Assembly: GCA_002104945.1 (NCBI GenBank)
Contig: MCFH01000065.1
Location: forward strand, 227,491 to 291,490
From: Piromyces finnis finn
Taxonomy: Eukaryota > Fungi > Neocallimastigomycota
Length of the DNA stretch: 64,000 nt
Reading direction: 5' to 3'
In this document: in pieces, positions 3,301-54,046 of the stretch
How positions within the stretch are numbered: the first letter of the stretch is position 1
How the letters are laid out: each line of letters starts with the position of its first letter
Position numbers and translations under genes: made by a program
The notes under the pieces: model-generated
What the model was told of the DNA's origin: nothing
Seen by the model: the letters and a program-made list of their open reading frames with translations, nothing else
Databases searched by the model: none

Positions 3301-4918
3301 ATTCTAAATATTGGGTTGGTACGGCGACCAATTTATCTTTATTAATATTCTTTTCATTATTATTATTACTACATGATTCATTATCATTATTACATGTTTC
3401 ATTAATTTTCGTTACAATACATTTAACTTTTTTATTAAAACTAATATATTCATCATCGCTGTCATCTTCATCATTAATGGTTCTAACAAGGCGGCCTTTA
3501 ACATATTCTTTTTCTTCATGGTTTGGGACGGAGGGATCTACTTTCGGTTTTTTGGTTAAGCTTCGGTCGAGAACATCATGATCTAATTGATCATTCTTGG
3601 ACTTCTTTCTTGGTTTTCTTTTTCTTTTACCTTTGTTACAGTGTCTGGCACAATAACCAGAACTAAAAGCGATTTTCTTAGAGTCATAGAAAGCATTTGG
3701 ATTATGCTTCTTTATCCACGGCAAACCAAGAATAACATCAACACCGGGGACTTGTAATCCATAAAGTTGAATTACTTCGAAGTGATTTTTGCAACGGAGC
3801 ATGCACTTCTCAGTCCTTTCCCAAACACTAACAACTCCATCACTAACACCTGAAACACGGAATGGTTCTACCTTTTCCAACTTAATACCAAGGTCTTCAG
3901 CAAGACTTGGATTAATGAAATTTAATTCAGAACCGGAATCAATTAAAACCTTAATCTTAACTTCCGAAACTTCATTGGTACTCAAGTAAAAGTCCACAAG
4001 GTTTAAATCACTTTTCACTCCCTTGACTCCAACTTTGTAAATTTTTGGATTAACAATTTTTGGAGTCCTTTCTTTCACAATTCTTAACACTTTTCTGGGC
4101 TTTACTCTATTAGGACAATTAAATTTTAAATGTCCTGGTTGTTTACAAAGAAAACATAACCCCTTTTTCTTTTCTTCTTCAAAGTTGTCTATGTTTTCAT
4201 TGTAATTTTTACTTGATCCTTGGATATTCACATACCTTTTGCGTTTATTTTCTCTACTAATTCTAAATACATCCACATCCATAGGATCGTTAGCCCTTCT
4301 ACCATTAAAATAAAATTCACTTAGAGAATTCCTTTTCATCATATCTTCAACTAAAATAGTTGAAGAAATCAATTGTTCAATTGAAGTTGGGTTTGATTCA
4401 ATGAAAGCCAACTTCTCCCTAAGTGGTGGTAATAAACCTTTCAGAAACATGTAGATTTTTGCGCTGTCATTAAAGCTTGAATTTTGGCTAATACGTTGAA
4501 ACTCGGTAATGTAATCTAATACCTGACCAAGTTTCCTTTGGCGAAGATTATCTAATTTACCGTTAGCTACAACGGTATCGTATCTATAACTGCCAAAATT
4601 AGCCTTCAACCTATCTACAAATTCATCATAATGGTTTAAAACCCCACTATTATTCTTCATCAACACTGAAGCCCATTCCAAAGGTTTACCAGAGAAGTAT
4701 GATATAACGAAGTCGACCTTGACTCGATCTGTATTATACAGTGTCGGTCGAGTACGAAATACCAACTCAACTCTGGTTAAAAATCCATCCAATTCTCTTT
4801 GTTTACCAGAAAATATCGGTGGAGCATTAATAATGTTCCCCGAATTCCCAGAAACACCCACAGTCCTATCACCCATCTCTAAATTTAAATTTTCAAACTC
4901 ACTAATTAAGTCCTCCAA
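329..4918 (-). CDS. Gag-Pol polyprotein (Gag, CCHC knuckle, aspartic protease, RT, RNase H, integrase, chromodomain)
   Basis: CFLCKQPGHLKFNC knuckle; LIDSGS protease; RLCIDYRRLN and YIDDILIYS (RT); ETDASNYAVG and DKELLAI (RNase H); HHCC zinc finger, SIDFIVDLP, SDRGSQF and QTERVN (integrase); GPFEI; YKLSWKGFDKSTWV chromodomain. The ORF begins at TTG; the first ATG is at 4876. Confidence 0.97.
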   Translation of the reverse strand: MEDLISEFENLNLEMGDRTVGVSGNSGNIINAPPIFSGKQRELDGFLTRVELVFRTRPTLYNTDRVKVDFVISYFSGKPLEWASVLMKNNSGVLNHYDEFVDRLKANFGSYRYDTVVANGKLDNLRQRKLGQVLDYITEFQRISQNSSFNDSAKIYMFLKGLLPPLREKLAFIESNPTSIEQLISSTILVEDMMKRNSLSEFYFNGRRANDPMDVDVFRISRENKRKRYVNIQGSSKNYNENIDNFEEEKKKGLCFLCKQPGHLKFNCPNRVKPRKVLRIVKERTPKIVNPKIYKVGVKGVKSDLNLVDFYLSTNEVSEVKIKVLIDSGSELNFINPSLAEDLGIKLEKVEPFRVSGVSDGVVSVWERTEKCMLRCKNHFEVIQLYGLQVPGVDVILGLPWIKKHNPNAFYDSKKIAFSSGYCARHCNKGKRKRKPRKKSKNDQLDHDVLDRSLTKKPKVDPSVPNHEEKEYVKGRLVRTINDEDDSDDEYISFNKKVKCIVTKINETCNNDNESCSNNNNEKNINKDKLVAVPTQYLEFSEVFNEKNCEVLPPHRPYDCEIKLKDDSTLFYGPLYPLTEVEREELKKYIDENLNKGFIRKSSSPAGAPILFVKKKDGSLRLCIDYRRLNNITIRNSYPLPLISDLLDRVKNAKIFTKLDLKSAYNLVRIKEGDEYKTAFRTRYGHFEYLVMPFGLKNAPATFQHFINDVLSDYLDDFVISYIDDILIYSNNIEEHHEHVKKVLKKLLENNLYVKLEKCEFDVEKTTFLGYVISKDGLQMDENKVKAILDWPVPKNVKEVQSFIGLCNYYRIFIKDFAKIANPLHKLTRKNVAFNWVKEDQDAFILLKSLFTSAPILKHADSNKQFIVETDASNYAVGAILSQEFDGKLHPIAFLSKSLTSCQRNYPIYDKELLAIVVALEEWRHYLEGARHPFIIYTDHKNLTFPRKPEMLSQRQIRWNLFLSRFDFKLIYRAGKKSGKPDILSRRSDHVENNINSDVSCLTISFHHSDNKPLIDSILLELKNDDLYNSIVQFKMNGSACNAPIKNIDKVIIDNEGFLLYNNLIYVPKSLRTRVLELHHDSVAAGHFGIKKTTELISRNFWWPRFHSDVKSFIKSCVTCCKSKVPRHKPYGLLSPLDTPSRPWSDISIDFIVDLPKSRDMTTLMVVVDRFTKFAHAIPLRCLPTASIAADAFIANVFRLHGLPDSIISDRGSQFTSDFWSRLCDLLNINHSLSTANHPQTDGQTERVNGILEQYFRCFINKKQNNWVDLIPFAEFAYNNTLQQSINQSPFFANYGFHPKFSLEIPANDRPSRAEQRVIDMNENFKLLKENLEKAKETYKKYADMKRMIPPEFEMGKKVWLLKDSPGTNLKRKLAPQMLGPFEIIEKVSSLAFKLKLPKTMRCHPVFHVSLLEPYFENKFNDRSNRRKRNIHLNTDLIEKIPEKIEKMKSVNGETFYKLSWKGFDKSTWVSEDHIPDKQLIQEFERNSKKSKYKSNDSSMKIRKNKVGNLIKHRYQPFVIEIPSRKDSL

Positions 4919-4974
4919 CGTTAAATATAAAACAAAATATAAAAAATGTTTTCTTACTACTGTTTCAAGTAAGT

Positions 4975-5029
<55 letters not shown>

Positions 5030-5145
5030 AAACTATTTCTACAAAAACGATGTTAGTTAATACAAAAGTTATTCAAACTCGATCTGTTATACAGTGTCGA
5101 ACAAGTTTTGTATTATATAATAATAATATTAATCAGAGTAGTTTT

Positions 5146-5182
<37 letters not shown>

Positions 5183-5192
5183 CTTCTGCTAG

Positions 5193-5288
5193 GGTAGCAA
5201 CAAAGTTTCTTCAATACTCTCTTGAACCAAGGTAGCAACAAAGTTTCTTCAATAATCTCTTGAACCAAGGTAGCAACAAAGTTTCTTC
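5193..5288. repeat. 38-nt tandem repeat (about 2.5 copies) in the 5' leader of copy 1
   Basis: ggtagcaacaaagtttcttcaata... starts at 5193, 5231 and 5269. Confidence 0.9.
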
Positions 5289-5325
5289 GGGCGGTAGATA
5301 TCCTAACGTACTCTTGAAGTAGTTA

Positions 5326-5337
5326 GGTAATTGTTAT
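5326..5337 (-). promoter_or_regulatory. Self-priming-type primer binding site (ATAACAATTACC)
   Basis: Directly follows the 5' LTR end (...TTACA) and has no TGG. It is complementary to GTAATTGTTAT inside the LTR (about 5460-5470). Confidence 0.85.
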
Positions 5338-5941
5338 TGTAATGCTGACACAGAAAGAATAGATTAGGATATCTATTCTATTACAATAACACAAAATTTA
5401 AAATAAAATAAAAAATTGTTTTATTAAAAATATCTTTTATTATAATAGAAATTTTATTAATAACAATTACATCGATAAAATGATGAAAAATATCTTCTAT
5501 TTATATTTTTCCTAAATACATTTATATTATATTATAACTATTTATTTCTTATATATTATTATTTAAAATCTACACTAAAATCTTAATTATTAATAAATAT
5601 TTAAACTATAACTATTTTTAGTAAAATACAATTGGCAATTCAAATTAAGTACCATTTAATTTGAATATGTGCCCATGTATTATTGATATATTAATCATTT
5701 ATTATTTATCTATTTCTATAAAAAAACAATACTAAAACTAGGGATTTAAATTGAGAATATTAATTTACTTGTTAAACATTAAAAATAAATTAATAATTTA
5801 TTTTGTTTTAAACTTTAATTATTAATAAATAAATTATGTCTCATTTTCTTTTTCTGAATATAATTTGTGTAACTTAAACAATAATACTTGTGGCTTAAGT
5901 TACATTAAAGATATCAAACAGAGGCGTTTGATATCTTTACA
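5338..5941 (-). repeat. 5' LTR (type A, about 604 bp) of copy 1
   Basis: TG...CA termini. Homologous to 19366-19976 and to 1-292. Confidence 0.93.
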
Positions 5942-7993
5942 GTCTTTTATAGTATATAATAAATTTATTTCAATAAGATAACTTATTCCTCAACTACTTT
6001 TAATTAATAAATATCAAAATTTTAATTTTCATATTTCTCAATGTATTTTAAATAAATCTAAAATTATTATATACTACGTCTAAAAGATGTCGCTCAGACT
6101 CTATCCTATCAAAAGGTGTCGAGCGAGGTCTTTTATAATATATAATAAATATATTTCAATAAAATAACTTTTTCCAATAAGTGATATTTACATTTTAATT
6201 CACTTATTTCTCAATTTCATTTTAATTAATAAATATCAAAATTTTAATTTTCATACAATATATTTTAAATAATTCTATAATTATTATATACCATGTTTAA
6301 AAGATGTCGCTCAGACTCTATCCTATCAAACGGTGTCGAGCGAGGTCTTTTAAGTATATAATAAGTTCATTTCAAAATAACAATTAATAATTCATTCAAA
6401 TAAGTGAAATCAACATACTAATTCACTTATTTCTCAATATATTTAAATAATTTTAAAATTTTATTAACTTTTTCTTAATTTTCTTTCTTTTTAAATAAGT
6501 TTTAATTTTCTTACTTTGCAATTAATTTTTTGATTTAATTTACTCTTTTAATTGTATATATCCAATTTAATTTATAATATACTATGTATAAAAGATGTCG
6601 CTCAGACTCTATCCTATCAAACGGTGTCGAGCGAGTTCTTTTTATAGTATATTATAATTAAATTTAATTTTAAAAGAGTTTCATCAATTTAAAAACAAGA
6701 GTATTTCATAAATATATTTCTATTAGTATTACAGATAGATTTTATATATAAAGATTTCATTGTTCCATACAGTAGAATTACACTTATTCCAATTCCAATA
6801 TAAAAAGGAAAGTTTCACAGAGTAGAAGTTCCACAAGCAAAGTTCCACGAGATTCGTTCAAAAGAATTCCACGAAGGAAGGATTTCACAAGGTAGTGTTC
6901 CACAAGTAGGTAAAAATTCCACAATTATAGTTCCACAAAGTAGTGTTTCACAAAATTTATTTAGAATTTCACAAAGTAGGGTAACACAAAATTAATGTTA
7001 CACTGACAGAAGTTACACCATAAATAGTTCCACAAGGTAGGCTACTCAAGTAGACAAAAAAAAAATTTCCGAAGAGAAAAAATTTCCGAAAAGTTCCAAA
7101 TTTTCTACGGTAGCAATTCCCAATGTTGTAACTTCAGAAAATAAAAATTGTTTTATTATTAAATATAAAACGTGTTTTTTAATAAGAAAAGGTAATTGTT
7201 ATTGTAAAAGTATAAAATTTAAAACAGATTTTATACTTAAAACAAAACAATTTTTATTAACACAAAAATAAAAAAATAAAACATTAAATTTTTATTTTAA
7301 AAAAAAACATTTTTATTTAAACTCTTAAAAATATTATTAACTATATAATAGTTAATAATTAAAAAATTGAAAATAACAATTACCTCGATTTAACAAATAA
7401 AAATTACATGTATTTATATTTTTTCATAATTATATTCTAATATATTATTCTATTTAAATAAACATATATTTAATATAAAATAAACAAAACTAATTTAATT
7501 AAATAATAAAATAACAGAACTAAACTAAACTAATTCATTATACTTTTAATTCAATTTGAGTAAACTCAAAATTGAATAAAGCCCATGTATTTTCTATAAA
7601 TTAATTTAATATTATCAATACTATTCTTAATATATTTCCTATTGAAATATAAATAAATCTATTTTTAAAACTAAGTTAAAATTATTAAACTATTCTAAAT
7701 TTAAATAAAAAAGTATAATCTATTCTAAAATCAAATAAAAAGTATTTAAAAAATATTTTAATTATTTTAAATATTTGAAATATTTAAATTTAATTAAAAT
7801 TCTTTTATTCCTTAAACTTAAATATTTATCTTAATTTAAATTTAACGGAATTATTATAAAATAATTTATTATTAAATTATTCCATAAAATTTACTCAAAA
7901 ATTTTATAATCAGTTTTACTAAATATTAATTTATTATTTAATAATTAATAATTAATTATTAAATAATCTAAAGATATATCTTATATCTTTACA
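5942..7993 (-). mobile_element. Non-coding LARD-like LTR element, copy 2 (5' LTR type B at 7203-7993, PBS 7191-7202, leader, first three array cores; cut by chromovirus copy 1)
   Basis: Reverse complement of 10444-12495 with only a few substitutions. Starts TGTAAAGATAT at 7993, where it interrupts the 3' LTR of chromovirus copy 2. Confidence 0.9.
6082..6642 (-). repeat. Three conserved ~53-nt hairpin cores of the LARD array (6082-6134, 6299-6351, about 6590-6642)
   Basis: aaaagatgtcgctcagactctatcctatcaaa(a/c)ggtgtcgagcgag(g/t)tctttt occurs three times, separated by AT-rich linkers. Confidence 0.95.
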
Positions 7994-8213
7994 CAAAACA
8001 ATACTAAAACTAGGGGTTTGAATTGAGAATTTTAATTTATTTGTTAAACATTAAGAATAAACTAATAATTTATTTTGTTTTAAACTTTAATTATTAATAA
8101 ATAAATTATGTCCCATTTTCTTTTTCTGAATATAATTCGTGTAACTTAAACAATGATATTTATGGCTTAAGTTACATTAAAGATATCAATCTGTGGCGTT
8201 TGATATCTTTACA
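7994..8213 (-). repeat. Truncated 3' LTR (type A) of chromovirus copy 2
   Basis: Matches 19756-19976 apart from a 1-nt indel. Confidence 0.92.
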
Positions 8214-8249
8214 ATCTCTCTCTCTAAGTCGAGCTCCTGCGAGATTAAT

Positions 8250-10443
8250 TTATAAAGAATCCTTTCTCGAAGGAATTTCAATTACAAATGGTTGGTATCT
8301 ATGCTTAATTAGATTACCAACTTTATTCTTTCTTATTCTCATGGAGGAGTCATTCAACTTATGTTTTGACTTTTTAGAGTTTCTTTCGAACTCTTGTATT
8401 AATTGTTTGTCCGGGATCTGATCTTCAGAAACCCAAGTGGATTTGTCAAATCCTTTCCACGATAACTTATAAAATGTCTCACCATTAACAAATTTCATCT
8501 TCTCAATTTTTTCTGGAATTTTTTCAATTAAATCTGTGTTAAGATGAATATTTCTTTTCCTACTATTAGACCTATCTATAAACTCGTTTTCAAAGTATGG
8601 TTCTAACAATGAGACATGAAAGACTGGATGACATCTCATTGTCTTTGGGAGTTTCAATTTAAAAGCGAGAGAACTAACTTTTTCAATTATTTCAAATGGA
8701 CCAAGCATTTGAGGTGCTAATTTCTTCTTCAAGTTAGTTCCCGGAGAATCTTTCAATAACCATACCTTCTTTCCCACTTCAAATTCCGGGGGACTCATTC
8801 TTTTCATATCGGCATATTTCTTATATGTTTCTTTTGCTTTTTCTAAGCTTTCTTTTAATAATTTAAAGTTTTTATTCATATCAATTACTCTTTGTTCAGC
8901 TCTACTAGGTCTATCATTAGCCGGGATTTCCAAGCTGAACTTTGGATGAAAACCATAATTAGCAAAGAATGGGGATTGATTTATAGATTGCTGTAAAGTG
9001 TTATTATATGCAAATTCAGCAAATGGAATAAGATCAACCCAGTTATTCTGCTTCTTATTGATAAAACAACGGAAATATTGTTCTAATATGCCGTTCACCC
9101 TCTCCGTTTGACCATCTGTCTGCGGATGGTTAGCAGTTGACAATGAATGATTGATATTAAGAAGGTCACAAAGTCTTGACCAGAAATCAGAAGTAAATTG
9201 CGAGCCTCTATCAGAAATGATGGAATTAGGAAGACCATGCAAACGGAAGACATTGGCAATAAAAGCATCAGCAGCAATTGAAGCAGTAGGAAGACAACGT
9301 AAAGGAATGGCGTGAGCAAATTTAGTAAATCTATCGACAACAACCATAAGTGTAGTCATATCTCTGGACTTAGGAAGATCAACAATAAAGTCGATAGAGA
9401 TATCAGACCAAGGCCTACTAGGAGTGTCCAAAGGGGATAACAATCCATAAGGCTTATGTCTAGGGACTTTGGATTTGCAACAAGTCACGCAAGATTTAAT
9501 AAAGGATTTAACGTCTGAATGAAATCTTGGCCACCAAAAGTTTCTTGAAATAAGTTCAACGGTTTTCTTAATGCCGAAATGGCCAGCAGCAACAGAATCA
9601 TGATGGAGTTCTAAAACTCTAGTCCTAAGAGATTTAGGAACATAAATAAGATTGTTAAATAACAAAAATCCTTCACCATCAATAATAACTTTATCAATAT
9701 TTTTAATAGGTGCATTACTTGTAGAACCATTCATTTTAAATTGAACAATGGAATTGTACAAATCGTCATTTTTAAGTTCTGATAAAATAGAATCTATTAA
9801 AGGTTTGTTATCGCTATGATGAAGTGAAATTGTAAGACAAGAAACATTAGAGTTAATATCATTCACTAAATGATCACTTCTACGAGACAGAATGTCAGGC
9901 TTTCCAGATTTCTTTCCAGCTCTATAGATGAGTTTAAAGTCAAATCTGGATAAGAACAAATTCCATCTAATTTGTCTCTGAGATAACATTTCAGGTTTTC
10001 TAGGAAATGTTAAGTTCTTGTGATCAGTATAAATTATGAACTGATGGCGTGCACCCTCTAAGTAATGACGCCATTCTTCAAGAGCAACTATAATAGCTAA
10101 GAGTTCCTTGTCATATATAGGATAGTTTCTTTGACAACTCGTCAAACTTTTTGAAAGAAATGCAATAGGATGTAATTTGCCATCAAATTCTTGAGAGAGA
10201 ATAGCACCGACAGCATAATTACTAGCATCAGTTTCTACAATAAATTGTTTATTACTATCCGCATGTTTCAGAATAGGAGCTGACGTGAACAGAGATTTTA
10301 ATAAAATAAAAGCGTCCTGATCTTCTTTCACCCAGTTAAAAGCAACATTCTTTCTAGTGAGTTTGTGAAAAGGGTTTGCAATTTTAGCAAAGTCTTTAAT
10401 AAAAATTCTGTAATAGTTGCATAAACCAATAAAAGACTGAACC
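8250..10443 (-). pseudogene. 3' half of gag-pol (RT thumb, RNase H, integrase, chromodomain) of copy 2
   Basis: Open frame, nearly identical in protein to the C-terminal half of 329-4918. Separated from its 5' half by an insertion. Confidence 0.93.
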
Positions 10444-11234
10444 TGTAAAGATATAATATATATCTTTAGATTATTTAATAATTAATTATTAATTATTAAA
10501 TAATAAATTAATATTTAGTAAAACTGACTATAAAATTTTTGAGTAAATTTTATGGAATAATTTAATAATAAATTATTTTATAATAATTCCGTTAAATTTA
10601 AATTAAGATAAATATTTAAGTTTAAGGAATAAAAGAATTTTAATTAAATTTAAATATTTCAAATATTTTAAATAATTAAAATATTTTTCAAATACTTTTT
10701 ATTTAATTTTAGAATAGATTATACTTTTTTATTTAAATTTAGAATAGTTTAATAATTTTAACTTAGTTTTAAAAATAGATTTATTTATATTTCAATAGGA
10801 AATATATTAAGAATAGTATTGATAATATTAAATTAATTTATAGAAAATACATGGGCTTTATTCAATTTTGAGTTTACTCAAATTGAATTAAAAGTATAAT
10901 GAATTAGTTTAGTTTAGTTCTGTTATTTTATTATTTAATTAAATTAGTTTTGTTTATTTTATATTAAATATATGTTTATTTAAATAGAATAATATATTAG
11001 AATATAATTATGAAAAAATATAAATACATGTAATTTTTATTTGTTAAATCGAGGTAATTGTTATTTTCAATTTTTTAATTATTAACTATTATATAGTTAA
11101 TAATATTTTTAAGAGTTTAAATAAAAATGTTTTTTTTTAAAATAAAAATTTAATGTTTTATTTTTTTATTTTTGTGTTAATAAAAATTGTTTTGTTTTAA
11201 GTATAAAATCTGTTTTAAATTTTATACTTTTACA
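10444..11234 (+). repeat. 5' LTR (type B, 791 bp) of LARD copy 1
   Basis: Direct repeat of 15794-16586 and inverted repeat of 7203-7993. Confidence 0.95.
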
Positions 11235-11246
11235 ATAACAATTACC
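11235..11246 (+). promoter_or_regulatory. Self-priming-type PBS of the LARD (ATAACAATTACC)
   Basis: Identical to the chromovirus PBS. Perfectly complementary to GGTAATTGTTAT at 11053-11064 within its own LTR. Confidence 0.88.
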
Positions 11247-11399
11247 TTTTCTTATTAAAAAACACGTTTTATATTTAATAATAAAACAATTTTTATTTTC
11301 TGAAGTTACAACATTGGGAATTGCTACCGTAGAAAATTTGGAACTTTTCGGAAATTTTTTCTCTTCGGAAATTTTTTTTTTGTCTACTTGAGTAGCCTA

Positions 11400-11630
11400 C
11401 CTTGTGGAACTATTTATGGTGTAACTTCTGTCAGTGTAACATTAATTTTGTGTTACCCTACTTTGTGAAATTCTAAATAAATTTTGTGAAACACTACTTT
11501 GTGGAACTATAATTGTGGAATTTTTACCTACTTGTGGAACACTACCTTGTGAAATCCTTCCTTCGTGGAATTCTTTTGAACGAATCTCGTGGAACTTTGC
11601 TTGTGGAACTTCTACTCTGTGAAACTTTCC
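11400..11630 (+). repeat. Cluster of about 11 YTGTG(G)AA motifs in the LARD leader
   Basis: cttgtggaac, ctttgtgaaa, tttgtggaac, ttcgtggaat, ctcgtggaac and similar motifs recur every 12-35 nt. Confidence 0.75.
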
Positions 11631-11779
11631 TTTTTATATTGGAATTGGAATAAGTGTAATTCTACTGTATGGAACAATGAAATCTTTATATATAAAATCT
11701 ATCTGTAATACTAATAGAAATATATTTATGAAATACTCTTGTTTTTAAATTGATGAAACTCTTTTAAAATTAAATTTAA

Positions 11780-13300
11780 TTATAATATACTATAAAAAGA
11801 ACTCGCTCGACACCGTTTGATAGGATAGAGTCTGAGCGACATCTTTTATACATAGTATATTATAAATTAAATTGGATATATACAATTAAAAGAGTAAATT
11901 AAATCAAAAAATTAATTGCAAAGTAAGAAAATTAAAACTTATTTAAAAAGAAAGAAAATTAAGAAAAAGTTAATAAAATTTTAAAATTATTTAAATATAT
12001 TGAGAAATAAGTGAATTAGTATGTTGATTTCACTTATTTGAATGAATTATTAATTGTTATTTTGAAATGAACTTATTATATACTTAAAAGACCTCGCTCG
12101 ACACCGTTTGATAGGATAGAGTCTGAGCGACATCTTTTAAACATGGTATATAATAATTATAGAATTATTTAAAATATATTGTATGAAAATTAAAATTTTG
12201 ATATTTATTAATTAAAATGAAATTGAGAAATAAGTGAATTAAAATGTAAATATCACTTATTGGAAAAAGTTATTTTATTGAAATATATTTATTATATATT
12301 ATAAAAGACCTCGCTCGACACCTTTTGATAGGATAGAGTCTGAGCGACATCTTTTAGACGTAGTATATAATAATTTTAGATTTATTTAAAATACATTGAG
12401 AAATATGAAAATTAAAATTTTGATATTTATTAATTAAAAGTAGTTGAGGAATAAGTTATCTTATTGAAATAAATTTATTATATACTATAAAAGACCTCGC
12501 TCGACACCTTTTGATAGGATAGAGTCTGAGCGACATCTTTAGATATTGTATATAATAAATTAAATTGAATATATAATTAAAACAAATTAAAATTTGATTA
12601 TATAATAAGTAAATTTGAAATGAATTTATTATATACTTAAAAGACCTCGCTCGACACCTTTTGATAGGATAGAGTCTGAGTGACATCTTTTAGATATAGT
12701 ATATAATAAATTAAAATTAAGAAATGAATTAAAATTTTACAATAAAAGTAAAAGTAATAAATGTGTAAAGTTAGTTAAATAAATAAATTATTCTTTATTA
12801 TAATAAGATTTCGATGACACCTTTTTAGAGGACAGAGTCAGATCGACATCTTTTTGGGAAATAGTATATAATAAATTAAATTGAAAATACTATAAATTAA
12901 TTTAACTTGAAAATTTGAAATATATAATTTAATTTAATGAAGTTAGAAAATGATTTGATATTTAAAATTACTTTTAAAATAATTTAATTTTATACTAAAT
13001 AAATAATTCGATGACACCTTTTCTTTAAAGGATAGAGTCAGGTCGACTTCTTTAATATGAAGATACAATATAAATTCGATTAACTAATTAAATAAATAAA
13101 ATATATTCAAGGATTATATATTATTAATTAAATTAGATAAATACAATTAAGAAGTTTATTAAATAATATATTAAAATATTATGAAGTAATACGAAAACGA
13201 GCTTAAAAAAAAAATAATTTAATTTCATTGTAATAACATGTTTTATACTTTATAAAGAATTCGCTGACACCAGTTGATAGGATGGAGTTGACTTCTTTTA
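11780..13300 (+). repeat. Array of about 8 conserved hairpin cores with variable AT-rich linkers (possible structured ncRNA array)
   Basis: Cores at about 11795, 12086, 12303, 12489 and 12639 (near identical), then about 12804, 13005 and 13254 (progressively diverged). Consensus AAAAGACCTCGCTCGACACCTTTTGATAGGATAGAGTCTGAGCGACATCTTTT. Confidence 0.93.
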
Positions 13301-15758
13301 TATAAAGGTGTATTTTATATAACTGAATATTTGACTAAATAGAAAATTCTTAATAATTAGAATATAAATTTAAAGCATTTTTAATTTGATTTGAATTTAT
13401 CAACAAAAGTCAATACAAATTTAGTTATTTAAAAAGTTATACATTTATTAAAAAAAAAAAAAAAAAAAAAAAAATTAATTTTATATTTCGTAAATTAAGA
13501 TAATTTGATTGTAATAGTTTATTAAATAATTCATTAAACAAATGATTAAGATTAATAATTAAAATAATTTGAATTCAATATGAGGAGGTTTTACAAATTT
13601 AGTTGTTAAATAAATTATGTTTTTTATATTTAATAAATTAAAATAAACTAATTAAATAAAGAATTTCTTATAATTGTAGAATAAATTCACAAATTTAATT
13701 TGATTTGAATTTATTATAAAGAAGTTATTGTATATCTAGTTAATAAGTTTATATTTTTATTAAGAAGTAAGTTTTATATTTAAAAGATTCAAATAACTTG
13801 AATAAATTAATATAGTAGCTTTGATTGAATAATTATAAAGTTAAATAAATATATAATAAGAAATGAGTGTAATATTTTTTTATTCTTAATAATATGATGG
13901 TAGTGAAATCAGAGCTAGAAAATTAATCTATTCTGGATCTGTTCTTAATTTCATTTAGTATTGTAGAATTAGAAATAGCTATAATAGAAATTAATGAGGA
14001 ATAGTTTTAGTAATAGTAACAATTTGATAATATAATAGTTAGTATTAATAATAATTAAAAAAAAAAATAGAATTAATAAATACAACAAATGAAAAAAAAA
14101 TATAATAAAATGTAATAAATAGAATAAATTAATAAATAGAATAAGTTAATAAATAGAATAAGTTAATAAATATGATAAATGTAATAAATATAATGAATAA
14201 AACAAATATAAATTAATGTAATATGTATAATAATTATAAGAGTTTTTAATAAATGAATAGTTTTTATGTACTTAATAAAACGAACTTTATAAAGGAAAAA
14301 AAAAAAAAAAAAGATTTTAATCTTTATACAATTCTTTTTAATGGAAGTATAATGAGATTGATAACTAAAATTACTATATATTGATTGTAGGAAATTAAAT
14401 GATATAATTATTGAAATTCATATATTCCTTTAATCAATAAATAAGATAAATGGAGTAAAATATGTTTTTAAACTAAATTTAAATATATCAATAGCTTAGT
14501 AATAATTAAATAAGGTGATGAATTTAAAATTGCTTTAATCTTTATATGGCATTTTTAATTTATTATCATACCTTTTATTCAAAAATGTATCAGCTCTATT
14601 TTAATATTTTAAGTGATGCTTTTGATGAAGTATTTTAATTACTTTATAATTAATGATATTTAGTACAACATTATGTATATGTTTATATCAATTCTGTGAT
14701 GTTTTATTGATGATATTTAAATTTATGAATTCATTGTTAAATTTTTAAAAAAAAAGAAATAATTTTATAATACCATATATTGATAAATTATAAAATAAAA
14801 GAGAATTATAAATATGCTAAAAGTATTTTAAAAATGTCTAAAAATGATAAATTTGTTAATTAAATTATAGTATTTACTTGATGACTTGATACCACTTTTG
14901 TTTATTTAATAATAAGATTAAAAAAAAAAATAGTGGTATAGTTAATATAATTATTGAATGATGTTTTTCCATTATTATTAATGAATGTTAATTTTTTTTA
15001 CAAATATTTTATTACTAAGAATTTTGTTATATTTATTTGCTTAATAATAACCTTTAAAAAAAATAAGTTCCACTTGGTTTAAAGTTTGTACAATAATAAA
15101 AAACATTTAATACTCTTTAAATGCTATTTTCTTTATAATTTTAGAATTGTCTGTTTGATATATTTTATATAAATTTTATCACAGACTTTTCATTTAAATG
15201 AGAGGGTGAACGAGATATTGTTCCAATATCTCCGTTGGTTAATAAAATCGAATTGATTGTTATATTGGAATCTACTTATAATATTTTATTGTAATCAATC
15301 AATCAATTTCAATTTTATACAAACTATGGATTTAATTTAAAATTTAATATTGAAATTTCTTCAGCTAATAAATCAAAGAAAGTTGAACAGATTATTATAA
15401 GTATTAATAAAAAGTATTAAAATTGTAAAATAGAATTTTAATCATGCATAAGAAGATTATAAAAGTCATGATGATCAAGAAGAATTGAATAAATAAAAAA
15501 TTTGAAACTTAAGTAAATGTTTTGTTTTGAATACTTAAATAAAAATGTTAATAGAAAACAATTTATAAATAACCATAATCTGAATATAAAAACAAATGGA
15601 TTCTTGATGATTAAGTTTTAGATAAATTATTAGAATTATGTATAAGTAACAAGAATGATAATAAGAGTATAAATAAATTAAATACTTATATATTTTTTTA
15701 ACAATGTTATGATTTAGAAAAAGTAGTAACCATTTGTTATTTAAATTTCTTCAAGAAA

Positions 15759-15793
15759 ATAATCTCGCAGGAGCTCGACTTAAAGGGCGAGAT
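15759..15793 (+). promoter_or_regulatory. Conserved 3' cis segment plus PPT shared with the autonomous chromovirus
   Basis: AATCTCGCAGGAGCTCGACTTAAAGGGCGAGAT versus AATCTCGCAGGAGCTCGACTTAGAGAGAGAGAT (minus strand, 293-325). Confidence 0.88.
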
Positions 15794-16586
15794 TGTAAAG
15801 ATATAATATATATCTTTAGATTATTTAATAATTAATTATTAATTATTAAATAATAAATTAATATTTAGTAAAACTGACTATAAAATTTTTGAGTAAATTT
15901 TATGGAATAATTTAATAATAAATTATTTTATAATAATTCCGTTAAATTTAAATTAAGATAAATATTTAAGTTTAAGGAATAAAAGAATTTTAATTAAATT
16001 TAAATATTTCAAATATTTTAAATAATTAAAATATTTTTCAAATACTTTTTATTTAATTTTAGAATAGATTATACTTTTTTATTTAAATTTAGAATAGTTT
16101 AATAATTTTAACTTAGTTTTAAAAATAGATTTATTTATATTTCAATAGGAAATATATTAAGAATAGTATTGATAATATTAAATTAATTTATAGAAAATAC
16201 ATGGGCTTTATTCAATTTTGAGTTTACTCAAATTGAATTAAAAGTATAATGAATTAGTTTAGTTTAGTTCTGTTATTTTATTATTTAATTAAATTAGTTT
16301 TGTTTATTTTATATTAAATATATGTTTATTTAAATAGAATAATATATTAGAATATAATTATGAAAAAATATAAATACATGTAATTTTTATTTGTTAAATC
16401 GATGTAATTGTTATTTTCAATTTTTTAATTATTAACTATTATATAGTTAATAATATTTTTAAGAGTTTAAATAAAAAATGTTTTATTTTTAAAATAAAAA
16501 TTTAATGTTTTATTTTTTTATTTTTGTGTTAATAAAAATTGTTTTGTTTTAAGTATAAAATCTGTTTTAAATTTTATACTTTTACA
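15794..16586 (+). repeat. 3' LTR (type B) of LARD copy 1
   Basis: Matches 10444-11234 with one G/T substitution and small changes in homopolymer runs. Confidence 0.95.
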
Positions 16587-18990
16587 GAACCTCTTTAACA
16601 TTCTTGGGAACCGGCCAATCGATAATTGCTTTAACTTTATTCTCATCCATTTGCAACCCATCTTTTGAAATGACATAACCAAGAAAAGTGGTTTTCTCAA
16701 CATCAAACTCACATTTTTCTAATTTAACATAAAGATTATTTTCAAGTAGTTTCTTAAGTACCTTTTTAACATGCTCGTGATGTTCTTCGATATTATTAGA
16801 ATAAATAAGGATATCATCAATATATGAGATAACAAAATCATCTAAATAATCACTAAGAACATCGTTAATAAAGTGTTGAAAGGTTGCAGGTGCATTCTTT
16901 AATCCAAAAGGCATAACCAGATATTCAAAATGACCATACCTAGTACGAAAAGCCGTTTTGTATTCGTCACCTTCTTTAATACGAACAAGATTATAAGCAG
17001 ATTTGAGATCTAATTTAGTGAAAATTTTAGCATTTTTCACTCTTTCCAGAAGGTCACTTATTAAAGGTAAAGGATATGAATTACGAATTGTAATATCATT
17101 CAACCTTCTATAATCAATACAAAGTCTTAAGGAACCGTCCTTCTTTTTAACAAATAAAATTGGGGCACCAGCAGGAGACGATGATTTCCTAATAAAACCT
17201 TTATTTAAATTTTCATCTATATACTTTTTAAGTTCCTCTCTTTCAACTTCAGTTAATGGATACAAGGGTCCATAAAATAAAGTTGAATCATCCTTAAGTT
17301 TGATTTCACAATCATAAGGTCTATGAGGAGGTAACACTTCACAATTTTTTTCGTTAAACACTTCACTAAATTCTAAATATTGGGTTGGTACGGCGATCAA
17401 TTTATCTTTATTAATATCCTTTTCATTATTATTATTATTACTACATGATTCATTATCATTATTACATGTTTCAATAATTTTCGTTACAATACATTTAACT
17501 TTTTTATTAAAACTAATATATTCATCATCGCTGTCATCTTCATCATTAATGGTTCTAACAAGGCGGCCTTTAACATATTCTTTTTCTTCATGGTTTGGGA
17601 CGGAGGGATCTACTTTCGGTTTTTTGGTTAAGCTTCGGTCGAGAACATCATGATCTAATTGATCATTCTTGGACTTCTTTCTTGGTTTTCTTTTTCTTTT
17701 ACCTTTGTTACAGTGTCTGGCACAATAACCAGAACTAAAAGCGATTTTCTTAGAGTCATAGAAAGCATTTGGATTATGCTTCTTTATCCACGGCAAACCA
17801 AGAATAACATCAACACCGGGGACTTGTAATCCATAAAGTTGAATTACTTCGAAGTGATTTTTGCATCGGAGCATACACTTCTCAGTCCTTTCCCATACAC
17901 TAACAACTCCATCACTAACACCTGATACACGGAATGGTTCTACCTTTTCCAACTTAATACCAAGGTCTTCAGCAAGACTTGGATTAATGAAATTCAATTC
18001 AGAACCGGAATCAATTAAAACCTTAATTTTAACTTCCGAAACTTCATTGGTACTCAAGTAAAAATCCACAAGATTTAAATCACTTTTCACTCCCTTGACT
18101 CCAACTTTGTAAATTTTTGGATTAACAATTTTTGGAGTCCTTTCTTTAACAATTCTTAACACTTTTCTGGGCTTTACTCTATTAGGACAATTAAATTTTA
18201 AATGTCCTGGCTGTTTACAAAGAAAACATAATCCTTTTTTCTTTTCTTCTTCAAAGTTGTCCATGTTTTCATTGTAATTTTTACTTGATCCTTGGATATT
18301 CACATACCTTCTACGCTTGTTTTCTCTACTAATTCTAAATACATCCACATCCATAGGATCATCAGCCCTTCTACTATTAAAATAAAATTCACTAAGCGAA
18401 TTCCTTTTCATCATATCTTCAACTAAAATAGTTGAAGAAATCAATTGTTCAATTGAAGTTGGGTTTGATTCAATGAAAGCCAACTTCTCCCTAAGTGGTG
18501 GTAATAAACCTTTCAGAAACATGTAGATTTTTGCGCTATCATTAAAGCTTGAATTTTGGCTAATACGTTGAAACTCGGTAATGTAATCTAATACCTGACC
18601 AAGTTTCCTTTGGCGAATATTATCTAATTTACCGTTAGCTACAACGGTATCGTATCTATAACTGCCAAAGTTAGCCTTCAACCTATCTACAAATTCATCA
18701 TAATGGTTTAAAACCTCACTATTATTCTTCATCAACACTGAATCCCATTCCAACGGTTTACCAGAGAAGTATGATATAACAAAGTCGACCTTGACTCGAT
18801 CTGTATTATACAGTGTCGGTCGAGTACGAAATACCAACTCAACTCTGGTTAAAAATCCATCCAATTCTCTTAGTTTACCAGAAAATGTCGGTGGAGCATT
18901 AATAATGTTCCCCGAGTTCCCAGAAACACCTACAGTCCCATCACCCATCTCCAAATTCAAACTTTTAAACTCACTAATTAAGTCCTCCAA
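16587..18990 (-). pseudogene. 5' half of gag-pol (Gag, PR, most of RT) of copy 2
   Basis: Open frame homologous to residues 1 to about 800 of the copy 1 polyprotein. Also begins at TTG. Confidence 0.93.
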
Positions 18991-19186
18991 TTCAAAATAT
19001 AATATACAATATAAAATTAAAATGGTTTCTTACTACTGTTTCAAGTAAGTAATCTTAAAAAAAAATTTTTTTTTTTTTTTAATTACACTAGTACAATATA
19101 TTCTAATACAAAAGTTATTCAAACGCGTTCTGCAAAGCAGTGTCGAACAAGTTTTGTATTACTAATTCCTTTAAGATTTTAATAGT

Positions 19187-19324
19187 TTTCTTTCTTCAAT
19201 TTCTTGTCCTTCGGCGGTAGAATCCAACCAAGTAGCTTTTTCTTTCTTCAATATCTTGTCCTTCGGCGGTAGAATCCAACCAAGTAGCTTTTTCTTTCTT
19301 CAATTTCTTGTCCTTCGGCGGTAG
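19187..19324. repeat. 52-nt tandem repeat (about 2.7 copies) in the 5' leader of copy 2
   Basis: tttctttcttcaat(t/a)tcttgtccttcggcggtaga... starts at about 19187, 19239 and 19291. Confidence 0.9.
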
Positions 19325-19365
19325 ATACCCTAACGTATTCTTGGATTTCGTTAGGTAATTGTTAT

Positions 19366-19976: not shown

Positions 19977-20440
19977 AAAAGTTTATAAAAAAACAGATTA
20001 TAAAATTTTACAATAAAACATAAAACACGAAATAAATAAAAAGAAACAAGAAAAACAAAATCTATTTAAAAATATCTCTTTTATTAATTTTATTTAGTTA
20101 TTAACTAAATAATAGTCAATAACAATTACGTCGTTTTAATCAAGAAATTTTACATGCATTTATATTTTTCGTAAATTATATTTTAATATACTATTCTATT
20201 TAATTATACATATATTCAATATAAAATAAACAAAACTAATTTAATACTAATTTAATTAAATAATAAAATAATAAAACTAAACTAAAACTAATTAAATACA
20301 CTTTTGATTCAATTTGAGTAAACTGCAAATTGAATACAGTCCATGTATTACCTATATATTAATTAAATATTAACAATACTATTTATTATATATTTATAAT
20401 TAAAAATACTAATTTAAAACTACGCTAAAGTTATTAAACT
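19977..20440 (-). mobile_element. Diverged LTR-B-like relic (U5/R portion) into which copy 2 appears to have inserted
   Basis: Patchy similarity to 7203-7690: aataacaattac, ttacatg(c/t)atttatatttt, ttcaatttgagtaaact and ccatgtatt occur in the same order. Confidence 0.7.
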
Positions 20441-52729: not shown

Positions 52730-54046
52730 AGAGAAGTTTTCAAGTGAGGCTTGACACGAATTGTGAAAACCTAAATATAAGCCTCTCATTCCAGGAACTG
52801 ATTCATCAGCTTTCTTGAAAAAGTGTCTATAGTTTCGTAAAGTAACACAACAAGGATACTCTGTATTCGATCCAGAACCATTACCAGTTTTTTGGAAACA
52901 TAAAAATAATGGTTTGAAAATAGCTGTGAAATAGCTAATACTAACTCTTCGTGATTCCACCTATTGCTGTTCCAACTAAGATAAAAAGAAAAGTTATCAG
53001 GCTTGTTGGATGAGAAAGAATCGTTGCTATTATTATTATTATTATTAAAGTTATCATTATTAATGGATGATGCATCAGAGGAATAAGTAGAACTATTGCT
53101 AGATGGCTGTAAAACTGAAGAACTATCAACTATTGAACTGTTATCAGAATTGATAAAACTATTAGAATTAATTGTTGAATGTTGAGATTGAAATTGTGTT
53201 TGTTGTAGATCTGGAATATTTTCATGATGGGAAACTTGTTGAAGATCTTGTTGAAGATCGGATTGTTGATGAGATTGTTGAACTGATTGATGAAATGATT
53301 ATTGAATTGATTGTTGATGTTTATTAGAAACTAAAATTTTACGTTTGAGTGTGGAAAAAGTGTATTTGTGATTCCTTCTACTACGAGCTGAAAAGGAAAT
53401 TGAGGTAACTGAAAGTTTCTTCTTTAACATGTGTAAGATTTTAATACAATCTTTCGATGAACCATGAACCTTGACTATGAAAAAGTGATCATTGATAGTC
53501 TGAAAATATTTAACACTAATAACTGAATTAAATTTATCTTCTATAATAACCTCGAGTTTTTCCCATAGCATATTAACTGACAATGATTGAATACCACGGA
53601 TAAAGAAGGAGCTAATATCATCTAAGGGGATACCATAAGAATGGGTACCACGTCTGATATAATTCTTATCTTTAATATAAAGGACTGACATGATAATTAA
53701 TTCTAATTAAAAATATTGAATATAAAATAAATACTAATAAAAAATTATAAATATAATGTATATGGAAAAAAACCTGTCTCTCTCTTCTTAAAAGTACTGG
53801 ATAGTACAAAAATTGTTACGATGCTTTGTTTAAAGTTTCTTTTTTTTGAATTCTAGTTGTAAATTTTCTTTAAAAATTCTGGTTTTGGTTTGTTGTTAGT
53901 AAATTCGATTCGCTTTTTGACACTAAAATTGTTTGACTTTACTTTTTATTAAATATTTAAATTGGTAAAAAATTTGAATCAAAGAATGTCGACACCAGAA
54001 AGCTTGTGAATAGTATTTTTACATGATGTAGAGTGAATCAGTCTCT
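52730..54046 (-). mobile_element. 3'-truncated LINE copy (5' UTR plus N-terminal ORF, with stops)
   Basis: Homologous to 57850-59170 and has the same 5' terminus (AGAGACTGA). Confidence 0.93.

Follow-up and report, generated by a model that had tools for sequence, protein, structure and literature searches.

Large retrotransposon derivatives (LARDs) are non-coding long terminal repeat (LTR) elements whose interiors reportedly determine a conserved secondary structure of the RNA (PMC7215508). LARDs and the VL30 elements are packaged and mobilised in trans (PMC4997597, PMC9450689, PMC7215508), and mouse VL30 RNA is efficiently packaged by the Gag protein of murine leukaemia virus through helper-related stem-loops in its leader (PMC4997597, PMC9450689). 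In the coding retrotransposon Tf1, the primer-binding site (PBS) is complementary to the first bases of the element's own RNA over 11 nt (PMC7175516). Here we analyse a 64,000-nt stretch of the gut fungus Piromyces finnis (contig MCFH01000065.1, positions 227,491 to 291,490; hereafter the window), in which a complete LTR element at 10444-16586 carries, in place of genes, an ordered array of eight hairpin units.

The window has a GC content of 22.8%, and the genome searched for related sequences is an assembly of 56.5 Mb in 232 contigs. Two coding elements in the window, one with a 1529-aa open reading frame (ORF) at 4918-329 and one with a split ORF, are identified by Pfam as Ty3/gypsy chromoviruses of the Tf2-1 type and are referred to below as helper 2 and helper 1, respectively. 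We favour, with slightly more than even confidence, the explanation that the gene-less element is a LARD-type parasite that has multiplied a leader signal of such helpers, and that this signal would probably be a Gag-binding packaging site.

Results

An ordered array of hairpin units in the element interior

All eight units lie on the plus strand, with the GACAC core at 11809, 12100, 12317, 12503, 12653, 12816, 13013 and 13266 and successive spacings of 291, 217, 186, 150, 163, 197 and 253 nt, in agreement with the roughly eight units at irregular intervals of about 150-290 nt that had been proposed in an earlier note on this DNA. Units 1-5 are near identical over ~95 nt. Scored with covariance model R1, which was built on units 1-7 and six helper hairpins, five of them from other genomic copies (13 sequences), they gave 76.1 bits (unit 1, core at 11792-11851 within a rod at ~11773-11874), 78.4 bits (unit 2, 12083-12142), 78.5 bits (unit 3, 12300-12359), 73.3 bits (unit 4, 12486-12545) and 76.4 bits (unit 5, 12636-12695). 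Each of the five is predicted to form one ~90-nt rod of ~35 bp at -28 to -33 kcal/mol (-32.6 kcal/mol for unit 1), with z scores of -6.4, -5.3, -5.1, -6.2 and -6.1 in array order, and none of 200 shuffled sequences folded as well. The one C-to-U change in unit 5 converts a G-C pair to a G-U pair.

Units 6 (12799-12858, 55.6 bits) and 7 (12996-13058, 50.9 bits) are diverged. Tested as 111-nt pieces, units 6-8 fold no better than shuffles, and the long outer rod is lost from units 6 and 7, but both retain the core fold with compensatory changes: unit 6 has a 5-bp stem, an AG bulge and an ACAGA loop, and unit 7 has a 5-bp apical stem. Unit 8 (13250-13303, 33.6 bits) is degenerate, having lost its 3' arm, and gave no consistent parse. 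The earlier description of five near-identical units followed by three decaying ones holds, with units 6 and 7 diverged but still folding and unit 8 broken. Throughout the array the cores are conserved; the linkers are homologous but full of insertions and deletions. A second, smaller hairpin (AAATAAGTGA...TCACTTATTT) is present in the linker between units 1 and 2 (11999-12051) and in that between units 2 and 3 (12222-12274), and is degenerate or absent in the later linkers.

Units 6 and 7 are probably the older ones, because their 5-bp stem with a 2-nt bulge is nearer to the 6-bp stem with a 1-2-nt bulge found in distant relatives, and because unit 7 is the best-scoring array unit under model R2 (39.8-49.5 bits), for which only those relatives were used. 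On this view a derived unit would have expanded in tandem later, and recently, at the end of the array next to the leader, giving units 1-5.

The length of the rods raises the alternative that units 1-5 are substrates of RNA interference (RNAi), making the array a polycistronic source of small RNAs that silence the helper or arise as a side effect. Their ~35-bp stems are near perfect, units 1-6 stay separate hairpins when the whole leader and array (2.1 kb) are folded together, and anaerobic gut fungi possess RNAi genes (PMC5796279). Conservation across helpers and relatives, however, covers only the top 9-10 bp and the internal loop, a length insufficient for Dicer products; in the relatives the lower stems show no conservation, and units 6 and 7 keep the core without the long rod. 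We regard a role as RNAi substrate as quite improbable.

The array unit corresponds to the leader hairpin of the helpers

Both helpers encode a single gag-pol ORF with Ty3 capsid, protease, reverse transcriptase (RT), RNase H, integrase, SH3_Tf2-1 and chromodomain regions, and their Gag contains a CCHC knuckle at aa 255-268 (CFLCKQPGHLKFNC). Model R1 detects two hairpins in each, all on the minus strand. The first, H1, occupies a leader position between PBS and gag start (19103-19161 in helper 1, 72.7 bits; 5057-5115 in helper 2, 69 bits). The second, H2, lies within the gag reading frame (18773-18834 in helper 1, 26.6 bits, E 2e-6, coding for Gag aa 53-73; 4701-4762 in helper 2, 29.8 bits, E 4e-7). 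Given these scores (69-73 bits for the leader hairpins of the window and 27-30 bits for the gag hairpins), the array unit is homologous to both, and by sequence homology it is the helper's own leader hairpin, multiplied.

Every helper copy examined had H1 in the leader (R1 68-74 bits) together with H2 in gag, ~115-175 nt past the ATG (R1 24-30 bits, R2 ~50 bits; R2 48.7-50.2 bits in the genomic copies of helper 1). H1 is nearly invariant although the leaders are only 74-79% identical overall, and it forms a conservation island of 0.82-0.90 beside leader and repeat regions of 0.1-0.5. Its apical stem covaries, CUGU..ACAG in helper 2 being replaced by CUGC..GCAG in helper 1. Over the codons for aa 53-73 that H2 occupies in both helpers, Gag reads VFRTRPTLYNTDRVKVDF, and the relatives read roughly AMESRPxxFxxDxxKVRF; the RNA structure of H2 seems to have shaped the Gag protein sequence. 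A further small hairpin, CTTACT-TGAAACAGT-AGTAAG, is located just upstream of the gag ATG on the minus strand (~4953-4976 and ~19035-19058). It is the most conserved stretch of the helper leaders (0.93 across subfamilies) and is absent from the gene-less element.

Homologous hairpins were also recovered beyond the helpers of the window. Gag homologues at 45-53% identity were collected from other assemblies and metagenomes, on contigs of 29-32% GC. Seven of ten such contigs gave exactly one match, 82-224 nt upstream of the ORF or just past the element (16.9-37.7 bits), the latter position being where a next copy would begin; among three near-identical contigs (L072-L074), two have the match downstream of the ORF and the shortest gave no match. 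When R2 was run on the window's genome and its matches were placed by coordinates, at least two additional families of chromoviruses (~1617-1635 aa and 1599 aa) had a match that precedes gag by 100-310 nt; R2 also recovered H2 inside gag of the helper families, and R1 recovered the leader hairpin of a third family (1531 aa).

A metagenome scan with a 24-base structured pattern yielded a single match, on a contig of 72% GC with a non-pairing stem, and was set aside as chance. One locus (L078; GCA_015059045.1, SVBD01000027.1) is a 5.2-kb contig that consists essentially of one chromovirus of the clade and is filed under a bacterial metagenome-assembled genome (Erysipelotrichaceae); the label probably reflects misbinning of a gut metagenome.

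A conserved internal loop within covarying stems

The common fold starts at its base with a lower stem that varies, continues through a stem of 5-6 bp, a 3'-side bulge of 1-2 nt and a 3-bp helix to a 1x5 internal loop, and ends in a short apical stem-loop. The internal loop is conserved: an invariant single A on the 5' side is opposed by A-N-(A/C)-G-(A/C) on the 3' side, with U-C-A-G-A in one case. The apical stem starts with C-G followed by C-G or U-A. A K-turn, like a ribozyme, was considered by eye and rejected; the would-be 2b position of the K-turn is C in helper H1.

The stems vary with their pairing maintained. The 3-bp helix occurs as GAC:GUC, AUC:GAU, CAC:GUG, GUC:GAC and GGC:GCC, and one stem column shows all four Watson-Crick types (C-G, G-C, U-A and A-U). 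Among the 13 sequences of the window's genome, 91.9% of cells are paired, compared with 30-45% in slid registers, and double changes occur in seven pairs. Among the relatives the figure is 84%, compared with 17-43%, with changes on both sides at 13 of 17 pairs, and none of 500 shuffles did as well. The pair table was made without the decayed units (unit 8 and four units of the decayed genomic copy L026), and one relative (L077) was parsed by eye. The stems covary both within the genome and among relatives. G-U pairs are present, and R1 scores ~78 bits on the sense strand as opposed to ~20 bits on the antisense strand, so the structure belongs to the RNA of the element's sense strand.

Both the leader location and the palindromic GUCGAC/UCGA in the stems, which could allow extended duplexes, would suit dimerisation (kissing-loop) sites of genomic RNA. 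Dimerisation nonetheless fits poorly. The apical loops vary by lineage in length and sequence (UUU, AUA, UAA, GUUUGAUA, UAAGUAU and others), with no GC-rich palindrome among them, and conservation falls on the internal loop instead. We consider this reading distinctly improbable; of the functions that had been suggested, a multimerised packaging signal appears to fit best.

Self-cleavage, also suggested at the outset, fared worse. Retrozymes carry hammerheads in their LTRs and circularise, and the case for ribozymes in the array is this analogy. The units are in the interior and not in the LTRs, and the conserved part is a simple, unbranched hairpin with one internal loop and without a known catalytic core. 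A scan of positions 5000-17500 on both strands against Rfam 15, at E up to 10, returned three chance-level matches only, far under their gathering scores (the best at 24.8 bits against a threshold of 51.4). That the units are self-cleaving ribozymes is, in our estimation, extremely improbable.

Whether the array is under selection was judged from its copies. In 17 aligned copies, variable positions make up 4.8% of the cores and 9.2% of the linkers (Fisher p 0.011), and comparison of the whole rods with the linkers gave p 0.003; cores no more conserved than linkers had been named beforehand as grounds for abandoning the idea, and they are about half as variable. A neutral tandem repeat, made uniform by recent duplication and a burst of copies, would account for unit numbers that vary through loss of one or two near-identical units. 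Tandem repeats are common in LTR-element interiors, and since the copies are 96-100% identical there has been little time for selection to act. This explanation is contradicted by the lower variability of the cores, by same-age linkers that diverged by insertions and deletions when the cores did not, and by the homology of the unit to a covarying hairpin in coding relatives that are ~50% diverged in Gag, and its probability appears very low to us.

Ends, priming sites and origin of the element

The element is complete and young, as the earlier note had stated. Its LTRs (LTR-B), in direct orientation with TG...CA ends, are 791 nt (5', 10444-11234, TGTAAAGATAT...TTTTACA) and 793 nt (3', 15794-16586) long and are 99.6% identical, differing in 793 nt by a single mismatch and two 1-nt gaps; the end of the 5' LTR, previously placed at 11236, was corrected to 11234. 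The target-site duplication (TSD) GAACC can be read directly in both flanks (10439-10443 and 16587-16591). A 5-bp TSD is the product of Tf1-type integrases.

The PBS (ATAACAATTACCT, 11235-11247) does follow the 5' LTR as had been noted, but it is complementary to the LTR itself and would not be a tRNA site: it is the exact 13-nt reverse complement of 11052-11064 (AGGTAATTGTTAT), which are the predicted first bases of the transcript and a candidate self-primer. The PBS would thus be of the Tf1 self-priming type by its complementarity, with a putative transcript start at 11052. The helper LTR (LTR-A) has the same self-primer motif with an 11-nt exact complement, and the same PBS follows both helper LTRs; in the element and the helper the complements (13 and 11 nt) sit inside the LTR, 128-185 nt upstream of the PBS. 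LTR-A and LTR-B are only ~68-70% alike over their alignable parts, yet the self-primer/PBS motif is common to both, as are the first 11 nt (TGTAAAGATAT), the ..TTACA end and the post-LTR sequence ATAACAATTACC. Among the metagenomic relatives, a brute-force search for complementarity of this kind gave nothing convincing, and these contigs may lack the relevant part of the LTR.

At the other end, the polypurine tract (PPT) was confirmed at 15763-15793, where a 20-nt block shared with the helpers (TCTCGCAGGAGCTCGACTTA) and a purine-rich tract abut the 3' LTR, with 76-77% identity over 91 nt to the helper PPT region. The leader (11397-11675, plus strand) contains 10 same-strand matches to the short motif CTACYTTGTGRAAY in 280 nt, four of them exact, and the helper leaders contain 2-3 related motifs (CTACTTGGTTGGAT) inside 52-nt repeats. 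On the minus strand, the helper leaders at 19190-19335 and 5195-5300 have three tandem repeats of 33-52 nt (CTACCGCCGAAGG...CTACTTGGTTGGAT) followed by long A-runs; these repeats differ strongly between subfamilies.

The ORF listing gave no ORF of at least 100 aa in the 4.56-kb interior, as the earlier note had reported, but the interior is not unrelated to genes. A decayed remnant of the integrase C-terminal region is present at 15241-15417 on the plus strand (tblastn to helper polyprotein residues 1266-1325, 40% identity, E 4e-9). This remnant of 60 residues is collinear with a weak protease remnant (tblastn E 0.13) and with the PPT block, in the same order as in the helper, so the element was not gene-less from the start and is, by these remnants, a decayed derivative of a Tf1/Tf2-like Ty3/gypsy chromovirus. 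With its LTRs and TSD, PBS and PPT, 4.56-kb non-coding interior, many copies and a coding element that shares its cis sequences, it is a LARD-type non-autonomous LTR retrotransposon by every character that sequence can test.

Copies in the genome and nesting in the window

The suggested genome-wide search found at least 25 copies of the array, 96-100% identical and many 100% identical over a unit. The eight units and their spacings recur in most of them, a few are without one or two near-identical units, and one old copy (L026) is decayed throughout. The ~20 best LTR-plus-leader matches with comparable coordinates all adjoin arrays.

The second array that had been noticed at 6082-6642 was found at 6078-6645 on the minus strand. 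It belongs to a second copy of the element (5946-7990, minus strand), which runs from the 5' LTR through the leader and units 1-3 into the 5' arm of unit 4. This full copy is interrupted in unit 4 by an inserted helper, whose LTR-A cuts it at 5945; the remainder lies just before the start of the window (R1 and R2 matches at C195:226611-227183). The first copy, at 10444-16586, is inserted in pol of the minus-strand helper 1, the ORF of which is split into 8250-10331 and 16582-18990. These insertions form part of a minus-strand nest at 1-20400: helper 2 is inside copy 2, copy 2 is inside the 3' LTR of helper 1, and helper 1, with copy 1 in its pol, lies itself within an LTR of a third type, similar to LTR-B (19980-20400). 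Insertion of a helper LTR-A inside a hairpin unit was seen in two cases (5945/5946, and locus L064, minus strand, near 1480), which may be chance or may reflect nesting through chromodomain targeting. Elsewhere in the window, two near-identical plus-strand stretches (TAGTAAATTCGATTCGCTTTTTGACAC...) lie at 53919 and 59044, 5125 nt apart, and may be an LTR pair or the leader of another element.

Discussion

A candidate packaging signal multiplied by a parasite

The hairpin has been kept and multiplied in an untranslated RNA, which argues for a function at the RNA level. Parasites of viruses often duplicate a packaging signal, as in defective-interfering RNAs, and the classical location of a retroviral packaging signal is between the PBS and gag, reaching into gag. 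Retroviral nucleocapsid (NC) knuckles recognise UG-rich runs as well as G residues left unpaired in stem-loops. The leader hairpin H1 and the gag hairpin H2 (aa 53-73) occupy a packaging-signal-like location, and in relatives the hairpin is 80-310 nt upstream of gag. Because of this location, the conserved purine-rich loop with its invariant G and the CCHC knuckle of helper Gag, we infer that the hairpin would be a Gag site.

The element would then have retained the cis-acting parts alone, namely the LTR ends, self-primer and PBS, PPT and leader, and the array would represent a structured RNA element in eight copies, seven of them working and one broken. The 1x5 internal loop would be the recognition site for helper Gag, through the CCHC zinc knuckle of its NC part. 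With many hairpins and ten UG-rich leader motifs, the non-coding RNA could beat helper RNA for packaging into virus-like particles, inside which helper RT would copy it by self-priming and helper integrase would insert the product with a 5-bp duplication. Mobilisation in trans by helper proteins is suggested by the young, TSD-flanked copies without genes. The earlier idea of a selected RNA cargo that travels with a trans-mobilised element accordingly gains support from the helper homology, the lower variability of the cores and the presence of at least 25 copies.

The conservation and covariation of the leader hairpin and its sequence-specific internal loop would also fit if a host factor read the hairpin for export, stability or localisation of unspliced RNA, in the manner of a constitutive transport element (CTE), and its multiplication would then serve to raise the RNA level. 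Multimerised CTEs act additively, and retention and multiplication in an untranslated RNA are as expected. Nothing points to a host factor, however; the place between PBS and gag with a second copy in gag is that of classical packaging signals, the UG-rich leader motif is multiplied as well, which fits NC binding, and Gag has the CCHC knuckle. We judge the host-factor explanation unlikely, though not strikingly so.

Several observations count against a multiplied packaging signal. No coding or autonomous element with this LTR, which would be the real helper, was present among the best 40 of 750 candidates. The array units are closer to the leader hairpin of L070, a relative found in another sample, than to the hairpins of the LTR-A helper itself. 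Much of the covariation leans on few lineages and on model-fitted alignments, and the structural parse maximised pairing; base composition may partly explain the lower variability of the cores (GC 42% in cores, 17% overall). The element occurs in four sequence runs as assembled contigs of uncertain kind (RNA only by guess) without start, end or strand, and one run contig bridges U3 into the leader. Finally, a conserved leader hairpin could serve another RNA-level role, such as export, stability or binding of a host factor.

A wider proposal, which we advance tentatively and at somewhat less than even confidence, is that the hairpin is a hitherto undescribed Gag-recognition (packaging) motif of the whole chromovirus clade of anaerobic fungi, and that the element outcompetes its helpers with 7-8 copies of it and ~10 UG-rich sites. 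If true, the element would be a hyper-parasite and a natural interfering RNA that limits helper spread.

Apart from the retroviruses and yeast Ty1/Ty3, little definition has been given to the packaging signals of LTR elements. The hairpin offers a compact candidate signal backed by covariation, with a clear invariant loop that is open to mutation, and a natural dose series exists: most helpers have one hairpin, one helper family has two and the parasite has 7-8. The many recent insertions indicate that the system is or was active, and the hairpin adds a new structured RNA motif for transposon annotation in anaerobic gut fungi.

Comparison with known systems

Retrozymes resemble the element as non-autonomous LTR elements with structured RNA modules, but the modules here are unbranched hairpins of the interior without a ribozyme match. 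With LARDs such as Sukkula of barley, the element has in common the LTRs, priming sites, a long interior without coding capacity, a large number of uniform copies and reliance on a coding helper; in contrast to them, it has a fungal host and predicted Tf1-type self-priming, and its structure can be identified as a multiplied helper leader hairpin. It would work like VL30 with its helper virus, but the candidate signal recurs here 7-8 times as an ordered array and the helper is a fungal chromovirus.

Tf1/Tf2 of Schizosaccharomyces pombe have the single gag-pol ORF, Tf2-1-type SH3, chromodomain integrase and 5-bp TSD in common with the helpers. A PBS complement within the LTR is likewise shared with Tf1, with 11-13 nt here as against 11 nt in Tf1 and a putative start. 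The Gag of the window's helpers has a CCHC knuckle, whereas Tf1 Gag, as far as we know, is without one, and we know of no leader hairpin of this kind described for Tf1.

Literature searches on LARDs, packaging signals and Neocallimastigomycota did not turn up such an array. New in this system are the fungal host, the putatively self-priming chromovirus lineage, a hairpin outside the families of Rfam and the identity of the multiplied module as the conserved leader hairpin of the helper; the extension of that hairpin to distant relatives and other chromovirus families may also be new.

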